Positions 45,192-56,220 of a stretch of 64,000 nucleotides of DNA are shown piece by piece. The notes beneath the pieces were generated by a model that saw nothing but the letters and a program-made list of their open reading frames with translations, was not told the DNA's origin and did not search any database. The position numbers and the translations under genes are program-made. This DNA is from Adineta vaga (Eukaryota; Animalia; Rotifera), in the NCBI GenBank assembly GCA_021613535.1, contig CP075495.1, positions 8,308,001-8,372,000 of the forward strand, written 5' to 3'. Within the stretch, counting starts at the first letter, position 1; each line of letters begins with the position of its first letter.

Positions 45192-46187
45192 ATGTCATCT
45201 TCGAATATTCATTCAACAGTGAATTTTACTTCATCTTCAACTGCTATCACACCTCCCTTACCAAGTGTATTCGAATTACTTGCTCAAGAACGTTTAACTG
45301 ATTTAATTCGTCCTTGTTTACGACAAGTTTTTAAATTTCTTCATGAAATTCGTCCACTTTCCAATCTATTTCGAATACTTTATAAATATAAAGATGAATT
45401 TATTCTATTGATTGAAAGTATTGTTCAATGGCTTTATCTGCACTTTTATTCAGCACTTATTGGGGAACATTTCTATGGTTTAAAACGTACAGCAAATCAT
45501 CGCTTACGTTCATTAATCTTTTCTGTCTTTCTACCTTATGTACAATTAAAACTCGAATTATTACATGAACAATTACGTACAAGTAATAATCAACGTCATG
45601 CAACATTTCATATTCTCTCACAACTTCTACCAAAAATTCAAGTAAGCATAAATTTTTCTATTTCTTATGATATGAATCAAAGTAAAATTGCATTTTTTTT
45701 AAAGATTTTTATCGAAGGTGTTTCTTGGCTGTATCGATTAGGTTATGCTTTCGGTCGAACTGAATACTATAGTCCAATGCTTCAATTAGCCGGTGTTAAA
45801 TTAACATACAGTAAAACACCTTCACCTGTCACACCTCCATCGACGACTGCTGGTCGATTTTTTTCAATTATTAGTCAAATTATGTCGAGTGGTTTATTTC
45901 TAATTCAATTTGTCGATTGGTGGAATAATACGAATGGTTCCAAACAGAAACCGACGAATTCAAATATCATTCCACCATTACCAACTTCGACTCCTACTCG
46001 ACAAGCAATTGGTAAACGTCAATGTCCTCTTTGTCGACAACCATGTAATGTCCCCACAGCAGTACTTGGTTCTGGTTATGTTTATTGTCATTCATGTATT
46101 AGTGATTATGTCAAACGTTATCATCGTTGTCCAACAACGCAACAACCAGTGACAAGTGAACATTTAATTAAAATGTATTTCGATTAA
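45192..46187 (+). CDS. PEX12: Peroxisomal RING E3 ligase subunit PEX12 (one intron ~45641-45703)
   Basis: PSVFELLAQERL, EHFYGLKR, VFLPY, SPMLQLAG, FLIQFVDWW, C-terminal CPLC...SGYVYCHSCI..YV....RCP.T RING variant. Confidence 0.93.
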   Translation: MSSSNIHSTVNFTSSSTAITPPLPSVFELLAQERLTDLIRPCLRQVFKFLHEIRPLSNLFRILYKYKDEFILLIESIVQWLYLHFYSALIGEHFYGLKRTANHRLRSLIFSVFLPYVQLKLELLHEQLRTSNNQRHATFHILSQLLPKIQVSINFSISYDMNQSKIAFFLKIFIEGVSWLYRLGYAFGRTEYYSPMLQLAGVKLTYSKTPSPVTPPSTTAGRFFSIISQIMSSGLFLIQFVDWWNNTNGSKQKPTNSNIIPPLPTSTPTRQAIGKRQCPLCRQPCNVPTAVLGSGYVYCHSCISDYVKRYHRCPTTQQPVTSEHLIKMYFD

Positions 46188-48504: not shown

Positions 48505-49116
48505 ATGAATAGTCTCCTAACGAATCGTGTTCAATCAGCCTATTCACGGGCAACCTATCGTTCGGAAACAGATGCTGACGATAATGATTATCCTCAGCAA
48601 ATTAAACAACGTCCAAAGACAAGTAAAAGTTTACATCGAGCAGGTTCAAATCTCTTCGAACATGATTCGAGAAGAAATGGAAATTCATCAACTCTTTCAT
48701 CAGCAACAAGTCATCGTCGACGATTGAAAACAGCCAGTAGTGCTACAACAACTAGTTCAAGACCAGGATCTCGTAAACTTCGTTCCGATGAAATCGAAAA
48801 TCTTCTACAAACACTTGATCGTGATGATACAGTTATTGTTCAACTTGATTGTTTAGCAAATTATCGAACACTCGTCGAAACAATTGATTTACGTCATACA
48901 CCAATTGATTCTCGATTATTATGTGCATTACAACAACGTGAGAATCGTATTGTCCAAGGCAATGCATGCCGTGATACACGTTTTCATTCTTTACTTGATC
49001 TACTTCAACCGGCATATACATCGGCAACGGCTGAACAAAATAGTTTGAATGAAATTAATGATAAACCTATATTAGAATATCCACATACTGAAATTCCAGT
49101 TGAATATGTTAAATAG
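48505..49116 (+). CDS. Hypothetical protein with basic Ser/Arg-rich N-terminus
   Basis: Intact ~200-aa ORF with coding-like composition; no family recognised. Confidence 0.6.
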   Translation: MNSLLTNRVQSAYSRATYRSETDADDNDYPQQIKQRPKTSKSLHRAGSNLFEHDSRRNGNSSTLSSATSHRRRLKTASSATTTSSRPGSRKLRSDEIENLLQTLDRDDTVIVQLDCLANYRTLVETIDLRHTPIDSRLLCALQQRENRIVQGNACRDTRFHSLLDLLQPAYTSATAEQNSLNEINDKPILEYPHTEIPVEYVK

Positions 49117-49391
49117 ACATTAATTTTTATAAAAAGAATCATCATTAACGTAATGAAAATACGTTTTAATTCTGCGAATAACAATCTTCTTACTACTTCG
49201 ATTTTTATATTTATACTGTTAATCCACTATGATTTGTACTTGACATACTTAATAAAGTCTATAAGGCAAACTATTGATCTGTTAAGTTCTAAATATGAAT
49301 GTTATACTAATTAATATAATTTTAAATAAATAATTCAAAGAAAGAAATCATATGTGATACGATCTTTTGCTATTCAGCACAATCGTTTATT

Positions 49392-49403
49392 AGCGACATC
49401 TGA
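49392..49403 (+). promoter_or_regulatory. AGCGACATCTGA motif upstream of the ERAL1-IMPA-PTTG1IP-TIMM21 cluster
   Basis: Variant of the 4856 motif, ~180 bp upstream of ATG 49584. Confidence 0.35.
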
Positions 49404-49583
49404 TCAAGTTGCTGTTAAAACGTATACTGATAGAACCTAAGAAAAAAATTATGAATCATTAAATTCAAGTGCTCGCTTTGCATTTGCACGTTGAATAGTA
49501 AACGACGTTCTATAAAAGCATTGAGAATCTTCTTCAAAGTATCATTATCTTTTCTTAGATTACTTTATTTGTAATCTAGAACA

Positions 49584-51621
49584 ATGATATTACATCGAAT
49601 CTCTCTTCTTACTCATCGACATACACGATCGATTATTTCAATTCGAGCTATTCAAATTGATTCTGATCCAAATGAAAAAATTATTCCCTTATCTAAGTTT
49701 GATTTAAGTAAACCATTGATTGGACGAACAAATGGTACGTGTTATTGCATGCAATAGGATATAATTTTTCGTGAAAATAAAAACATCTACCTTTGTCAAT
49801 TAGCTGAACAGACTGCTATTTCATTACTACGTCCAGATATGCCTCATGATTCGGAATTACTTAAAGTAGCAATTATTGGAGCACCAAATGCTGGCAAAAG
49901 TACATTTGTCAATCGTCTAATGGGTTGGAGAGTAAGTGAAGAGAACGAATAATAAAAGATGTCAGTTGTGGTTTGAAAATCGAAATATTAATTAAAACGA
50001 TATTTAGATTTCATCTGTATCCAAACGACCACACACTACTCGTCATCGAATAACAGGCGTTTTGACTGATTCTAATAAACAAATTGTAAGAAATGATCTC
50101 ATTCTTTCATTCTTAGCTAATATTTACCATAGGTTTTTCTTGATACACCTGGTTTTGTTGCACCATGGCGTAAAAAACGGTAAATGAAAATAGATTTCGT
50201 TAAACTACTTAGTATCAATCATTATTTCTATTGTCATTCAGACATAATCTAGAGAAATCAATGATTCTTGATCCTCATTCAAGTTTGTGGGATGCGAATC
50301 TAAGTAAAAAGATCGACATATTTTCTTTATTGTATATTTTAATCTGTTCTCCTATCTTAGTTTGTGTCGTACATGATGTTTCGAATCATTGGCTTCGCTT
50401 TAAACTTGATGAAGAAATCCTTAAATGTCTTTATGCACATCCAGAAAAAGAAGCAATTCTTATTCTAAATAAAGTATGAAAGAAAGTTTTTTTTTTCTGT
50501 TCACTTTTAAATACTATCTCACTATTTCAAAGGTTGATTCAATCAAACGCAAACGTATGTTATTAGATGTAACAACTATTCTTACCGATGGTTCACTCAA
50601 TGGTATACCCTATCGTTTGGATTCACCCTATCATCGTAATGGTGAACTTGATATGGAACGATTATTTCTTAAAACTGCTCATGAAATGAATATACCTTTA
50701 CCCAAAAATGAGAATGATATTGAAAAAGAACGTCTATTAGCTGATATGAAAGAATATGAAAAGAAATTATTGAGTATTCAGATGGAAAATATTGATCTTG
50801 ATCTCGAAGAAAATCAAGTGAAAGAATTAATTTCACGTCATGAAGATAAAAGTTTAACATTAGAACAATTATCTGATAACGTATCATCTCATATTCCCTA
50901 TAAATCAATGAAAGATATAAGTCCATTTGAATTCAAAAAAGATCTTATGGAAACAACAAATTGGCATTTATATTATAAAAAATTATCTCAAATTCGTTTA
51001 TTCACAAAAGATCGCTCGACTTGGCCATATTTTAATCAAGTCTTTATGATTTCAGCAAAACAAAATCGTGGTATAGCTGCCATTCGAGTAACTATCTCTA
51101 TCTTACAAACATAATGGTCGATCGAAAATGTTTCATTTTAGAAATATCTTTTCTCACGAACAAAACCAGCTTCATGGATGTTTCATCGAAATTTTGTTAC
51201 TGATCAATATCCACAAGAAATAGCTGAAATGTGTATACGAGAAAAAATGTTAGAATATCTACCGGATGAAATTCCTTATACTTATCTTTTGGTATGACAT
51301 AAAACAAATCTTTGAATACATAATTTAGTATTAAAATGTTTGTCTTAGACAAATGAACGATGGGAATTAGACGAAAATGATGTTCTTCATATGACTTTTC
51401 TAGTTTATCCACGTGCTAAACAATTGAAACGTGATGTTGTATGTAAACATATTCTTTTTTCTTTGAAATATCAAATAATTTATCCGTTTTTCCAGAGTGT
51501 ATTATTAAAAAATCATGGCGAAGCAATTAAATTAATCAGTATTGAAAGTGAAAAAGCACTTTCTACAACATTTCGTTGTGAAATTAAATTAAAATTAATT
51601 GTTAAAACTTCTCATGAATAA
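49584..51621 (+). CDS. ERAL1: Mitochondrial Era-like GTPase (multi-exon)
   Basis: Presequence-like N-terminus MILHRISLLTHRHTRS; G1 KVAIIGAPNAGKST, G2 VSKRPHTTR, G3 FLDTPG, G4 LNK(V)D, VFMISA; KH region IREKMLEYLPDEIPY. Confidence 0.92.
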
Positions 51622-51682
51622 ATCGAAATCTGTTCAATCAAGTTTTTCAACTGTTATTATTTTTGTTTTTGTTTGTTTTCAG

Positions 51683-52996
51683 ATGTTTGAAAATGAAATT
51701 GATATTTGTTATAAAACTATTCTTGATCTTGTATCTTTAGCTGGAAAAGTAAGTTGTAAAATTAACTTGATTCATTAAAGAATTATTCTATTTAGGTTGT
51801 TTGTGAAGGTTTTTCTATAACAAAACGTATAGAAACAAAAAGTAGTGCAGCTGATCTTGTCACTGAATATGACCAGCGTGTTGAAAAAATTTTAATAGAA
51901 AAATTACAAGAAAAATTTCCAACGCATAAGTTCGTACTTTTGAACAGAAAAAAAATAATTTTCTATTTATCAAATATAGATTTATTGGTGAAGAATCAAC
52001 TGCATCAGAAACCGAAATAAAATTTACTGATGATCCAACATGGATTATTGATCCTATTGATGGCACTACCAATTTTGTACATGGGTAAATTGAGCACGCG
52101 AATGGAATATTCTTCAATGAAAGTTTTAATTTATGTACATAGATTTCCAATGGTAGCAATATCTGTTGCATTTGCTATTAATAAAGAAGTAATTATTGGA
52201 GTAGTTTATAATCCAATTTTGGATCATCTTTATTCAGCAATACGTGGCAAAGGAGCATTTAGAAATGGTCGACCTATTCAATGCTCAAAACAAAAAGGTT
52301 AGTATCTTAAAAAACTTAAGAGAGGTGTAAGATAGATGATTGTGACTTTTTTAATTTTGATTTTCACTTCAAAGATATGAATGCTTTTCCTATTAATTGA
52401 GTAATTGATTGTACGTGTATTTTTCTAGAACTTTCTCTATCTCAAGTGATTGGTGCATATGGCCCTAGTCGAGATCCAGATATTCTCAATGCGAAAAATG
52501 AAAATCAACGTAGAATCATTGAAAAAGCTCAAAGGTAAATACAAAGTAGAAGATGAATAGATATGAACATATTCCTTTCTTTGCAGTATTCGTATGATGG
52601 GTAGTGCAGCTTTAAGTTTATGTTTTATAGCTGAAGGTTCTTGCGATGCTTATGTTGATTACGGTGGCTATATTTGGGATTATGGTATCACAAAAAAATA
52701 TGATCTTCTCTTCCTTTAACTAAATTTGTGATTGATTTCTTCAATAGCTGCTTGCGATTTAATTGCTCGTGAAGCTAGTGCTTATACATGTGATCCAACC
52801 GGTAGATAGCAATTTAATTATTTCTAAATAAGATTTTGTTTTCTTAGGTGCACCGTTAAAGCTACATCATCGTCGTATATTATGTGCAGCTTCGAAAGAA
52901 CTTGCTGAACAAATCTCACCATTATTGATACATATCGATTATTTTTCGAATGATAAAAAACCGACAGTTACTTTTGAATCAATTTCAAAACTATGA
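51683..52996 (+). CDS. IMPA1: Inositol monophosphatase (multi-exon)
   Basis: [55 protein letters not shown]. Confidence 0.93.
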
Positions 52997-53036
52997 TCAG
53001 ATATTTTTATAATAATTACACTACTTTTTATTCTAG

Positions 53037-53757
53037 ATGATGAAAACTTCGTTCATTTTCATTTTAATTAGTGTTATCGTTAGTTTAACATCTAGCGATC
53101 CTGTCGACCAATGCAGCGCTTTTACGAATTCAGACTGTAAAACCTGTTTAAAAAATACAGAATGTGCTTTTTGTAAAAATACTAAACGATGTTTTTTACA
53201 TCAATTTTATGAAACAAATCTACCATGTTCACCATCAGATATGCAATACAAAACATGTGTTGGTAAATTATTTGAAATATCTTGATCTATTGACAAATCT
53301 TACTCGTAGGTAGTCTTCAAATATGGCTTATTGTTCTTGGTTCGGCAGGTGGTGTTATTCTAATAGCTGTCATAATTATTATCATTTGTTGTCGTAGAAA
53401 ATGTGTTCGACGTGCACGTCAAAAGTTCGTTGCGGAGATTAAATCAATATTCAAATGTGTTTTTTTCTACTTCTGTTCATTTCTAGAGATCAAGCGAAAG
53501 AAGATGCATATACTCGAAATCTAGAAGATCGACGAACTACCGCTGCAGTTAGGTTAGAATCAATAAATTTTATTCTCAGAAAAAAGTTCTTCTCATAATT
53601 ATTTAGATCGGAAGAAAGAAAGCAATCAGGTGATAATCTTCGTATGAAATACGGTATATGAACAATCTCTCTGAATTTAATTATCTGACTAATTAGTATA
53701 CTTGTAGGTATATTAAAAGCGAAAGATGATGGTACCGATTATAAACGTTTCAGTTAA
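53037..53757 (+). CDS. PTTG1IP: PTTG1-interacting protein (PBF)-like: signal peptide, PSI domain, TM helix
   Basis: Signal peptide, CKTCLKNTECAFC PSI-like domain, TM exon (IWLIVLGSAGGVILIAVIIIIICC), C-terminus LRMKYGILKAKDDGTDYKRFS* matching the PTTG1IP KYG...YxRF end. Confidence 0.85.
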
Positions 53758-53950
53758 ACAATAAAATGATACATCGACAAAATATTTCTTGGCATTTGAT
53801 TCTGTGATTTTTCTTTTGATGTCTTTCATAATTTTTGATTGCAATAATTTTGTTTTAATAATTATTAAGAGAATAATAATTTGTGTTTTTTTTTGTACTG
53901 ATAAAATAAATCAAGATTATACATGTTCAACTTTTTTTTCCCCTATATAG

Positions 53951-54850
53951 ATGATTCTTCCTTCGATCTGTTTTGTTGCTAAGCAATGTCATAATCAATG
54001 GCGTTCATCTTTCTTTCGTACAATTATTGTTATTAATCAAAGACAATTAGCAACATTAGGAAAACAAAAAAAAGATTCGAAAAAACAGGATAATAATGTT
54101 GTTATTCAATCAACAACAGACAATCAAATAGAAGTAGCAACGTTTAAAGAAAAAGGTAAAAGAATATTTTCGTACAAGTCTTCTTTTATTCTGAATATTA
54201 TTTCCCTTGTTTGTAGCTCAACAAGCAGCGAAAGACACGGGTTATTCATTAGTTGTTATTGCTGGTGTTGCAGCATTAGGTGGTTTATGTTATTTAATGC
54301 TACATGAATTATATTCGAGAGAAACACCAAATGGAATTTATAAAGAAGCATCGAAAATGTGTTTAGCCAATACAGAAGTAAATTTTATGCTTAAACAACA
54401 TGTTTAAATATCATAAGCATTTTATTTTCTAGGTCCAAGATGCATTAGGTACACCTATTATGGTTCATACCACACCACAGATTGGTTCAATGCGTATCAA
54501 TAATGTTCGGTACAGAATAATTTCCTGTAAATAGTTTTAACTAATATATAACTATTATTTTAGTGCAAAAATGTTCGATGAAAAAGGTCATCGAGGTATG
54601 ACACTCTCATTTTATTTAACCGGAAAGGAACGAAGTGGTGTTGTTGGTGTAAAAGTTCAGAAAGTAATCCTATGTTTCATTTCTTCTATCAATTATACCT
54701 TTATTTATTTTTACATAGAATATTTCCAATAAATTTGTTTATGACTATATTATTGTTCAACTTGATCGACCGTGGCGTGGTCGTAATATGATCCAAATTC
54801 ATGAAAATCTCGATACATCAAAAACAACACCACAAACACTCGACATATAA
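53951..54850 (+). CDS. TIMM21: Mitochondrial import inner membrane translocase subunit Tim21 (5 exons)
   Basis: Presequence, TFKEKAQQAAKDTGYSLVVIAGVAALGGLCYLMLHELYSRETPNGIYKEA..C....VQDALGTPI; last exon ...FVYDYIIVQLD...TLDI*. Confidence 0.88.
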
Positions 54851-54946
54851 ACATACACACAAAAATCTTCATTTTTTTGTGTACATAGTTATTTTTTAAA
54901 AAGATATATACACATACATATAGGTTCGATTGTTGTTTTGTTATCT

Positions 54947-56220
54947 TCAATAATGTGGTCGAATTGTTGTTACCATGGTTTTTTCTGTTCGAGCATCTTG
55001 ATCAATATGACTATTATGGTATGAAATAAGATGAGGATGTTTTTTCTTTTTACTTGAATGATATCGACGATCGATGATTGGAATTGACGATGATGTTGTG
55101 TTTGTTGTCGCCGTTGGTATAAGACAATATTTACGAAATATAAAGATTGCAATAGCAAGAAGAAGAATCAATAATGTCATGGCCACGAACGCATAAAATA
55201 CATAAAGAATAAACGTTAGAAATGTTATTCGAGATGATAAGACTTCTTCCGAAGTAGAAATCGATGATGAATCATTAAATTTCCAACGAAAACGGAAAAA
55301 TGAACGTCGAAGTAATGATGAATCACTCGTATTGAAATTTGAATATGTTGGCCATGGAACTGTGGTACTACTAATCGTTGGATATCTTTGACTTGAACTC
55401 ATTGTTGTTGTTGTTGAAACTAAAATAGAAGTTTTAATAAATTTCATTCTATTCTTTGTTTTTACATACTATCTGGACAATTTTCAATAAGAATATCATC
55501 AATAGCAAACCAAGTTGTTGAGGTAGTTTTGTTTTCTGGTAAATGTCGAATTTCAATTTCGATCTAAACGGAGGAAAAAATTTTACAGTAGAAATGTTTT
55601 TATTAGAAAGAATTCTTTGTTTTCTACACGAAATTCTTCTGCTGCTTTAAATGTAAGATTTGCTTGTTGCCAAAGGGATTCAATGTCGTCGGATGTATTC
55701 AGATTTTTTTGTGTTAGAGCTTTCCAATGACCCAGAGATAAAATTTGTGTATGATTAGTTTTAATAAGAAAAACTTCAATTTGATCTTGTTCATTTTCAA
55801 TATTAAATTGAAATGTTAATCGAATTGTATATGAACATGAACGCGTTAAATATAACCATGGAGATGTAATAACATCAGTAAAACCTTTTTCTTTATCAAT
55901 ATTACTTTCATCAACAGCAATTAAAACTGACATTGAAAAAACATATTTGTTTTTCTTGCTTCACTTTGAAATCAAATAGTTTACCTTTATCATCACTTTC
56001 ATCCTCGAGATTTTTTATTTGCCATCGTCGACCAAGATTCCATTTGCAAGTATTCAATGAAAATGTACATCGTTGATTATATCGTATTGAAGAAATCGAT
56101 ATCAACATGAAATTTATCATGTAACAAAGAAAATCTTAGAAAAATTAGACAATTATTAAATTTAATCTTATAATTTCAAAGATGAACCTTACATATTTTC
56201 ATTGATGATAATAAAATCAT
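54947..56220 (-). CDS. MAM-domain type I membrane protein
   Basis: Spliced signal peptide MILLSSMKIYFLCYMINFMLISISS; CTFSLNTCKW, ITSPWL, WQQANL, FAIDDILIENCP (MAM hallmarks); S/T-rich stalk; TM segment. Confidence 0.78.

Follow-up and report, generated by a model that had tools for sequence, protein, structure and literature searches.

Whether genes that follow one another on a single strand with almost no DNA between them are transcribed separately or as one unit is a question raised directly by a cluster of four genes in the bdelloid rotifer Adineta vaga. The cluster lies at positions 49584-54850 of a stretch of 64,000 nucleotides (nt) of contig CP075495.1 (assembly GCA_021613535.1, positions 8,308,001 to 8,372,000), referred to here as the window, and encodes, in order, a mitochondrial Era-like GTPase, a member of the inositol monophosphatase family, a small type-I membrane protein, and the mitochondrial translocase subunit TIM21 (genes 1 to 4). 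An earlier note, made from the sequence alone, had proposed a polycistronic unit of four same-strand genes with gaps of 61, 40, and 193 nt, in which a polypyrimidine tract and AG sit directly on each downstream ATG (51683, 53037, and 53951). Rereading of positions 49000-55400 reproduced all of its coordinates for the cluster and agrees with this description: the ATG of gene 2 abuts GTTTTCAG, that of gene 3 abuts ATTCTAG, and that of gene 4 abuts CTATATAG. The combined sequence and RNA evidence makes it likely that the cluster is an operon resolved by spliced leader (SL) trans-splicing without intercistronic DNA, of the type found in Ciona and in the SL1-type operons of Caenorhabditis elegans. 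For genes 1-3 this reading is firm; for gene 4 it is weaker.

The RNA evidence consists of Logan contigs from four runs belonging to four studies (X1, X5, X11, and X14); these are assemblies, for which part of the contig pieces is listed. The listed introns are removed in contigs of all four runs, and the contigs are therefore derived from RNA. Two contigs from X11 carry CTTACCAAG right before the AG at 51681, the acceptor of gene 2, and a contig from X1 carries the same sequence right before the AG at 53949, the acceptor of gene 4. Together with the AG, CTTACCAAG forms the last 11 nt of the rotifer SL, GGCTTATTACAACTTACCAAGAG (PMC3795323, Table 1), so that 9 nt of leader are visible in each contig. 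A cis-spliced exon is ruled out as the origin of this overhang: CTTACCAAG occurs once in the window, at 45257, within a coding exon and followed by TG, and the 11-mer is absent from the window altogether. The acceptors of genes 2 and 4 are true SL trans-splice sites, and the visible leader tail is that of the ordinary, single known rotifer SL. Because the leader joins an AG that abuts the ATG, the mature mRNAs of both genes read SL-AUG, with the leader as their whole 5' untranslated region (UTR).

The 3' ends of the upstream genes fall on the same positions. In X5, a gene 1 contig ends at 51683 and continues with 13 A, and a gene 2 contig ends at 53037 and continues with 9 A, evidence that comes from a single run with one contig per junction. 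Since the genome reads ATGTTTG and ATGATGA at these positions, the A-runs are real tails that begin with the first base after the acceptor AG. The poly(A) of genes 1 and 2 thus starts at the acceptor AG of the next gene, and the intercistronic DNA amounts to 0 nt. The earlier note had likened the cluster to nematode operons, in which a poly(A) site, a spacer, and an acceptor follow one another. That geometry is ruled out at junctions 1 and 2, where the poly(A) sits on the AG, and has to be replaced by the spacer-less Ciona or SL1 type. The hexamers that it had pointed out were found in place. An AATAAA at 51617-22 overlaps the stop codon of gene 1 and is the sole such hexamer for junction 1, 59 nt upstream, and another at 53905-10 lies in junction 3, 40 nt 5' of the gene 4 acceptor. 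In junction 2, an AATAAT starts 26 nt 5' of the gene 3 ATG, and its 40 nt contain zero GT dinucleotides, as also noted before. For gene 3, contigs stop at 53882 and 53901.

RNA that crosses a junction is at hand from two organisms. In A. vaga, X1 record 3 spans 52847-53261, connects gene 2 to gene 3 over junction 2 without interruption, and shows splicing to either side of it; one upstream intron (52685-52747) is kept, as would be the case in partly processed RNA. The second case comes from another bdelloid, represented by two 99.9% identical, intron-free contigs, L053 (JGI 3300002346) and L054 (Logan SRR5248462). These encode 243 amino acids (aa) of the phosphatase, recovered in one high-scoring segment pair, followed by a 64-nt gap ending in TTTATTTCAG directly before an ATG and by a complete gene 3 open reading frame (ORF) of 174 aa, with an AATAAA that starts 27 nt before the gene 3 ATG. 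L053/L054 is the assembly of a fully cis-spliced dicistronic RNA. At junction 2, these assemblies are in favor of the polycistronic transcription proposed in the earlier note; no contig over junction 1 or junction 3 is found among those listed.

At its upstream end, gene 1 has an ordinary leader, because contigs without any trans-spliced sequence reach back to 49485 (X14); another such contig starts at 49540 (X11), and the leader measures at least 99 nt. This leader free of trans-splicing is the one hint of a promoter ahead of gene 1 that would serve the cluster. It also contains a candidate SL acceptor, TTATCTTTTCTTAG, with its AG at 49557-58, about 25 nt 5' of the ATG. A contig from X1 stops exactly on this AG at 49557, and the motif is conserved in L023, a metagenomic bdelloid contig described below, and in A. 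steineri (L052), such that SL addition may occur at this site. A TATA-like motif, GTTCTATA(A/C)AA, is present about 35-45 nt 5' of the candidate acceptor at 49506-49521 and at about 3510-3525 of L052; the A. vaga contig that starts at 49485 begins upstream of this motif.

The gene models, whose coordinates are collected in Table 1, were built from the joints in the RNA contigs and GT..AG rules, and databases were searched with them exon by exon. All four spliced models are complete ORFs, with 25 GT..AG introns of 46-131 nt in total, at least 15 of which are matched by joints in RNA contigs. Intron 6 of the phosphatase gene (52685-52747, 63 nt), whose inclusion would bring a stop codon, is retained in a high-depth X1 contig and has low depth in X11, which suggests frequent intron retention or partly processed RNA. 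The nearest ORF past gene 4 is on the minus strand (54947-55447), and the cluster therefore ends with gene 4.

Table 1. Genes, leader, and junctions of the A. vaga cluster (window coordinates)
Feature	Position	Strand	Details
Gene 1 5' leader	49485..49583	+	carries candidate SL acceptor
Gene 1, mitochondrial Era-like GTPase (ERAL1-like)	49584..51621	+	499 aa, 10 exons; stop TAA 51619-21
Junction 1, 61 nt	51622..51682	+	gene 1 3' UTR, doubling as polypyrimidine tract and acceptor AG for gene 2
Gene 2, inositol monophosphatase family	51683..52996	+	288 aa, 8 exons; stop TGA 52994-6
Junction 2, 40 nt	52997..53036	+	gene 2 3' UTR, which is also the gene 3 acceptor
Gene 3, small type-I membrane protein	53037..53757	+	167 aa, 5 exons; stop TAA 53755-7
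Junction 3, 193 nt	53758..53950	+	gene 3 3' UTR, AATAAA, gene 4 acceptor
Gene 4, TIM21 (mitochondrial inner-membrane translocase subunit)	53951..54850	+	224 aa, 5 exons; stop TAA 54848-50

An acceptor that runs directly into a start codon could simply be frequent in this DNA. On both strands of the 64-kilobase (kb) window there are 266 acceptor-like sites, and an ATG comes next in 11 of these (4.1%, vs 3.1% after any AG). Just three of the 11 open an ORF of at least 31 codons, and all three are in the cluster, which makes the pattern specific to the cluster rather than a background of the window. A wider, sequence-only survey of 264 kb (the window and 100 kb on either side) gave 19 acceptor-ATG sites with an ORF of at least 40 codons and 3 in the reversed sequence, a count too noisy to build on, as the heuristic overlooked the real junction at 51683 and, for the two others, scored the upstream ORF wrongly. 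Because it failed on the junctions of the cluster itself, no genome-wide figure is given.

Comparison with other bdelloids shows that the arrangement has been kept. The four-gene order, whose conservation in other rotifers the earlier note had suggested checking, recurs in A. steineri and in the metagenomic contigs L023/L024. In A. steineri, contig CAJNOI010000078.1 carries one-strand genes for proteins of 500 aa (GTPase), 274 aa (Inositol_P), 168 aa, and 224 aa (TIM21), with gaps of 66, 46, and 233 nt between coding sequences and an AG abutting the ATG at three of three junctions. A metagenome scan with one TIM21 exon yielded 14 bdelloid contigs, among which L023/L024 hold all four genes in order, L025-27 contain a three-gene version, four short ones contain genes 2-3-4 or 3-4, and five are too short for a neighbor. 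In all, at least eight distinct sequences keep the layout. In all three species, junction 1 measures 50-66 nt, its polypyrimidine tract and AG adjoin the ATG, and an AATAAA overlaps the stop codon. Across five lineages, junction 2 measures 37-54 nt, with the acceptor 0-6 nt 5' of the ATG in every sequence. Junction 3 is 190-351 nt, with the AG directly on the ATG in all lineages but L023/L024. Many of the junctions have an AATAAA or AATAAT hexamer that starts 21-28 nt 5' of the ATG, and from this position ordinary cleavage would land at or near the AG.

A second form of the locus is without gene 1. An old duplicate on contig 5 of A. vaga (10050519-10054000, minus strand) retains genes 2, 3, and 4 and both flanks, and no remnant of the Era gene was detected at 10054000-10055300, even at E = 50. 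The Era gene is likewise absent from L025-27 and A. steineri L056, and probably from L055. In A. steineri, the Era-less version stands on a second contig and has a 1.7-kb spacer. As the absence is common to the contig 5 duplicate, L025-27, and A. steineri L056, the loss or gain of the Era gene is older than the split of these species. The spacer of the Era-less copies measures 1.1-1.7 kb, and their candidate phosphatase acceptor lies 36, 20, or 6 nt 5' of the ATG rather than abutting it.

These data can be read in another way, in which the four genes are independent, overlapping units that have their own promoters in the last exon or intron of the upstream gene, the SL trims a short outron, and the close packing reflects genome compaction. 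A number of points weigh against an operon or toward such units. Pouchkina-Stantcheva and Tunnacliffe reportedly showed in 2005 that SL trans-splicing in bdelloids serves monocistronic genes as well, and the reaction is found outside operons too. Contigs cannot reveal single molecules, and a two-gene contig, being an assembly, is no proof of one molecule. Of the unpaired acceptors that the earlier note took for SL sites, those of genes 2 and 4 are verified by the contigs with an SL tail, while no SL-bearing contig for gene 3, or for gene 1, is found among the contigs listed. Gene 4 stands behind 190-351 nt in every lineage, the 193-nt gap in A. vaga is long enough for a promoter, and the TIM21 ATG of L023/L024 has its nearest 90 nt free of AG. 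In the Era-less copies, expression of the phosphatase is driven by upstream DNA of those copies, and these genes can therefore use promoters of their own. Finally, the wider neighborhood of 13-19 kb is also collinear between the copies compared, so gene order alone is not specific to an operon and is ruled out as proof of one. Separate internal promoters are compatible with the data at hand. However, independent units leave unexplained why poly(A) is placed exactly on the acceptor AG at two junctions, why gaps of 37-66 nt and the abutment of AG and ATG persist across species and in both duplicates, and why the phosphatase has lost this abutment exactly where the upstream gene is missing. They also have to contend with junction-crossing RNA in two organisms, and for these reasons we regard them as an unlikely account of the cluster.

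It is more improbable by far that the pattern is a product of chance and artifact, with coincidental acceptor motifs and with SL overhangs, poly(A) overhangs, and bridging contigs that stem from assembly chimeras or DNA contamination. In favor of this, one X5 contig is probably chimeric (53045 to contig 6:9602917), and the SL is visible for just 9 nt in each contig. Nevertheless, an identical 9-nt overhang followed by AG, matching the SL, appears at two sites in two studies, poly(A) occurs at two acceptors, the removal of the listed introns in all four runs speaks against DNA, and at least eight distinct sequences share the layout. An SL-resolved operon therefore remains the reading we prefer, although membership of gene 4 is the weaker part of it, because of the 193-nt gap, a gene 3 poly(A) site that has not been located, and the missing AG in L023/L024. 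A single promoter, a single precursor molecule, leader addition on genes 1 and 3, and the inclusion of gene 4 are inferred.

In the mechanism that we propose, RNA polymerase II would start upstream of about 49485 and read through genes 1, 2, and 3, and probably gene 4. Each downstream cistron would be freed by trans-splicing of the 23-nt bdelloid SL onto the AG that abuts its AUG, with the leader providing the entire 5' UTR of the downstream mRNAs, and the upstream mRNA would be polyadenylated at the very AG used as the acceptor of the next gene. The upstream 3' UTR would then hold the branch point and polypyrimidine tract of the following gene, and because these elements sit there, transcription must pass the boundary for either mRNA end to be made. 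How the 3' end itself is formed may be answered in two ways. Ordinary cleavage at the AG is favored by junction 2 and by many orthologues, where a hexamer stands about 20 nt upstream. Alternatively, the 3' end could be made by trans-splicing itself: once the SL is on the downstream AUG, the upstream RNA set free would have its 3'-OH exactly at the AG and would be debranched and polyadenylated without a conventional cleavage signal. We consider this unlikely; junction 1 fits it best, with a tail at the AG and a sole AATAAA 59 nt upstream, whose position is kept in three species.

Among known systems, the cluster most resembles the operons of Ciona intestinalis, in which cistrons are directly juxtaposed, the poly(A) tail comes right behind the AG, and most sites lack an AATAAA within 40 nt (Satou et al. 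2006, PMC1488885). The features held in common are the use of a single SL for downstream cistrons, 0 nt of intercistronic DNA with the upstream tail right after the acceptor AG, a frequent lack of AATAAA within 40 nt of the poly(A) site (compare junction 1), and a membership of unrelated housekeeping genes. The rotifer cluster differs in phylum, SL sequence, and SL RNA genes, in that several of the orthologous junctions have an AATAAA about 15-20 nt 5' of the AG, and in that it comprises three or four genes whereas Ciona operons are mostly dicistronic. The SL1-type operons of C. elegans (Williams et al. 1999), as relayed in passages of PMC1488885 and PMC7986045, likewise have the upstream poly(A) site adjoining the downstream trans-splice site. 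According to those passages, they possess a canonical AAUAAA upstream, a given transcript is presumed to yield either the upstream or the downstream mRNA but not both, and they form a rare class beside the SL2 operons. With the SL2-type operons of C. elegans and with those of Oikopleura, the cluster shares co-oriented, SL-resolved genes and an enrichment for mitochondrial and housekeeping functions, but spacers there measure about 100 nt and 23-30 nt, respectively, compared with 0 nt at two junctions here. The SL2 type is ruled out by this 0-nt spacer at two junctions and by the ordinary SL tail, as opposed to the specialized SL2 of nematodes. No second, operon-specific leader is visible among the SL tails at genes 2 and 4, and we know of none in rotifers. 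The polycistronic units of kinetoplastids are similar in that upstream polyadenylation is coupled to downstream SL addition, yet they are genome-wide, consist of genes without introns, and have a poly(A) site that precedes the splice site instead of coinciding with it.

SL trans-splicing in bdelloid rotifers has reportedly been known since 2005. Operons, on the other hand, are listed as 'ND' for Rotifera in a comparative table from 2008 (PMC2481426), and a paper from 2021 states that they have not been reported in rotifers (PMC7986045). A 2025 paper names rotifers among the lineages with trans-splicing and operonic transcription, and the sections of it available to us contain no rotifer data (PMC12460157). 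No further published account of rotifer operons was found in the literature searched, although one in a journal outside its coverage is possible. The locus quite probably provides, with backing from RNA, concrete evidence that operons exist in one more animal phylum. It would moreover be an operon of the spacer-less kind, which has been described as the dominant form in Ciona alone and as rare in C. elegans. Such a case would bear on whether lineages with an SL evolve these operons convergently as a rule, and on the way in which a single phosphodiester bond can be a poly(A) site and a 3' splice site at once. If 3' ends made by splicing prove true, bdelloids would be a second, independent animal system beside Ciona for splicing-coupled 3'-end formation. 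The old duplicates with and without gene 1 offer a natural experiment on the entry of a gene into an operon or its exit from one, and gene annotation and promoter mapping in bdelloids should allow for shared transcription units.

The identities of the genes support most of the names given before. ERAL1, IMPA, and TIMM21 were upheld by domain and PDB matches, and PTTG1IP, the name proposed for gene 3, was not. Exon 2 of gene 1, the P-loop exon, matches MMR_HSR1, and exon 8 aligns with residues 321-367 of human 'GTPase Era, mitochondrial' (PDB 8csp_a, E = 2.4e-9) and, weakly, with bacterial Era. This single-copy gene therefore combines a GTPase domain with a C-terminal Era-type KH region, the combination by which Era/ERAL1 proteins were recognized here. 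Its exon 7 (50533-51087) contains an insert of about 120-150 aa between the NKVD and SAK motifs of the GTPase domain that has no Pfam match and is 82-88% conserved in L023 and A. steineri. Four exons of gene 2 match Inositol_P (E = 8e-8 to 4e-15), with scores of up to 56.3 bits where the cut-off is 27. Gene 4 matches TIM21 on exon 2 (E = 6e-9) and on exon 4, and its TIM21 score is 36.4 bits, above the cut-off of 24.1. In A. steineri, the TIM21 gene includes an intron of about 1.2 kb (L052:8524-9761), compared with 54 nt in A. vaga, which may be an insertion.

Features of the gene 3 protein are a signal peptide, a PSI-like domain rich in Cys, and a single transmembrane helix. In A. steineri, the orthologue P0004 also has one transmembrane helix and gives a sub-threshold match to PSI_integrin (E = 0.0025). 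No named relative was returned by an Atlas feature search, PDB, phmmer against 1.8 billion representatives, cluster names, or a word-based search, and the homologues found are uncharacterized rotifer proteins only. The human PTTG1IP protein has a fitting architecture, and the label is plausible, though confirmed by no search.

A few minor observations concern the contigs and the SL genes. One X5 contig departs from the locus at 53045, and its remainder is found at contig 6:9602917; another X5 contig diverges at 53402, and both are probably assembly chimeras. The genome encodes 42 SL-exon sites, and in the copy read, the SL ends in CCAAGAG followed by a GTAAAT donor; in the genome, a T precedes the leader at the position of a G in the published SL. 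The sites are grouped in a few clusters, at contig 5:9884356-9925969 and 10912931-10934587, at contig 2:8684673-8691979, about 313 kb beyond the window, and at L002:1340-1560. Many of them form head-to-head (divergent) pairs about 155 bp apart with a common short central region.

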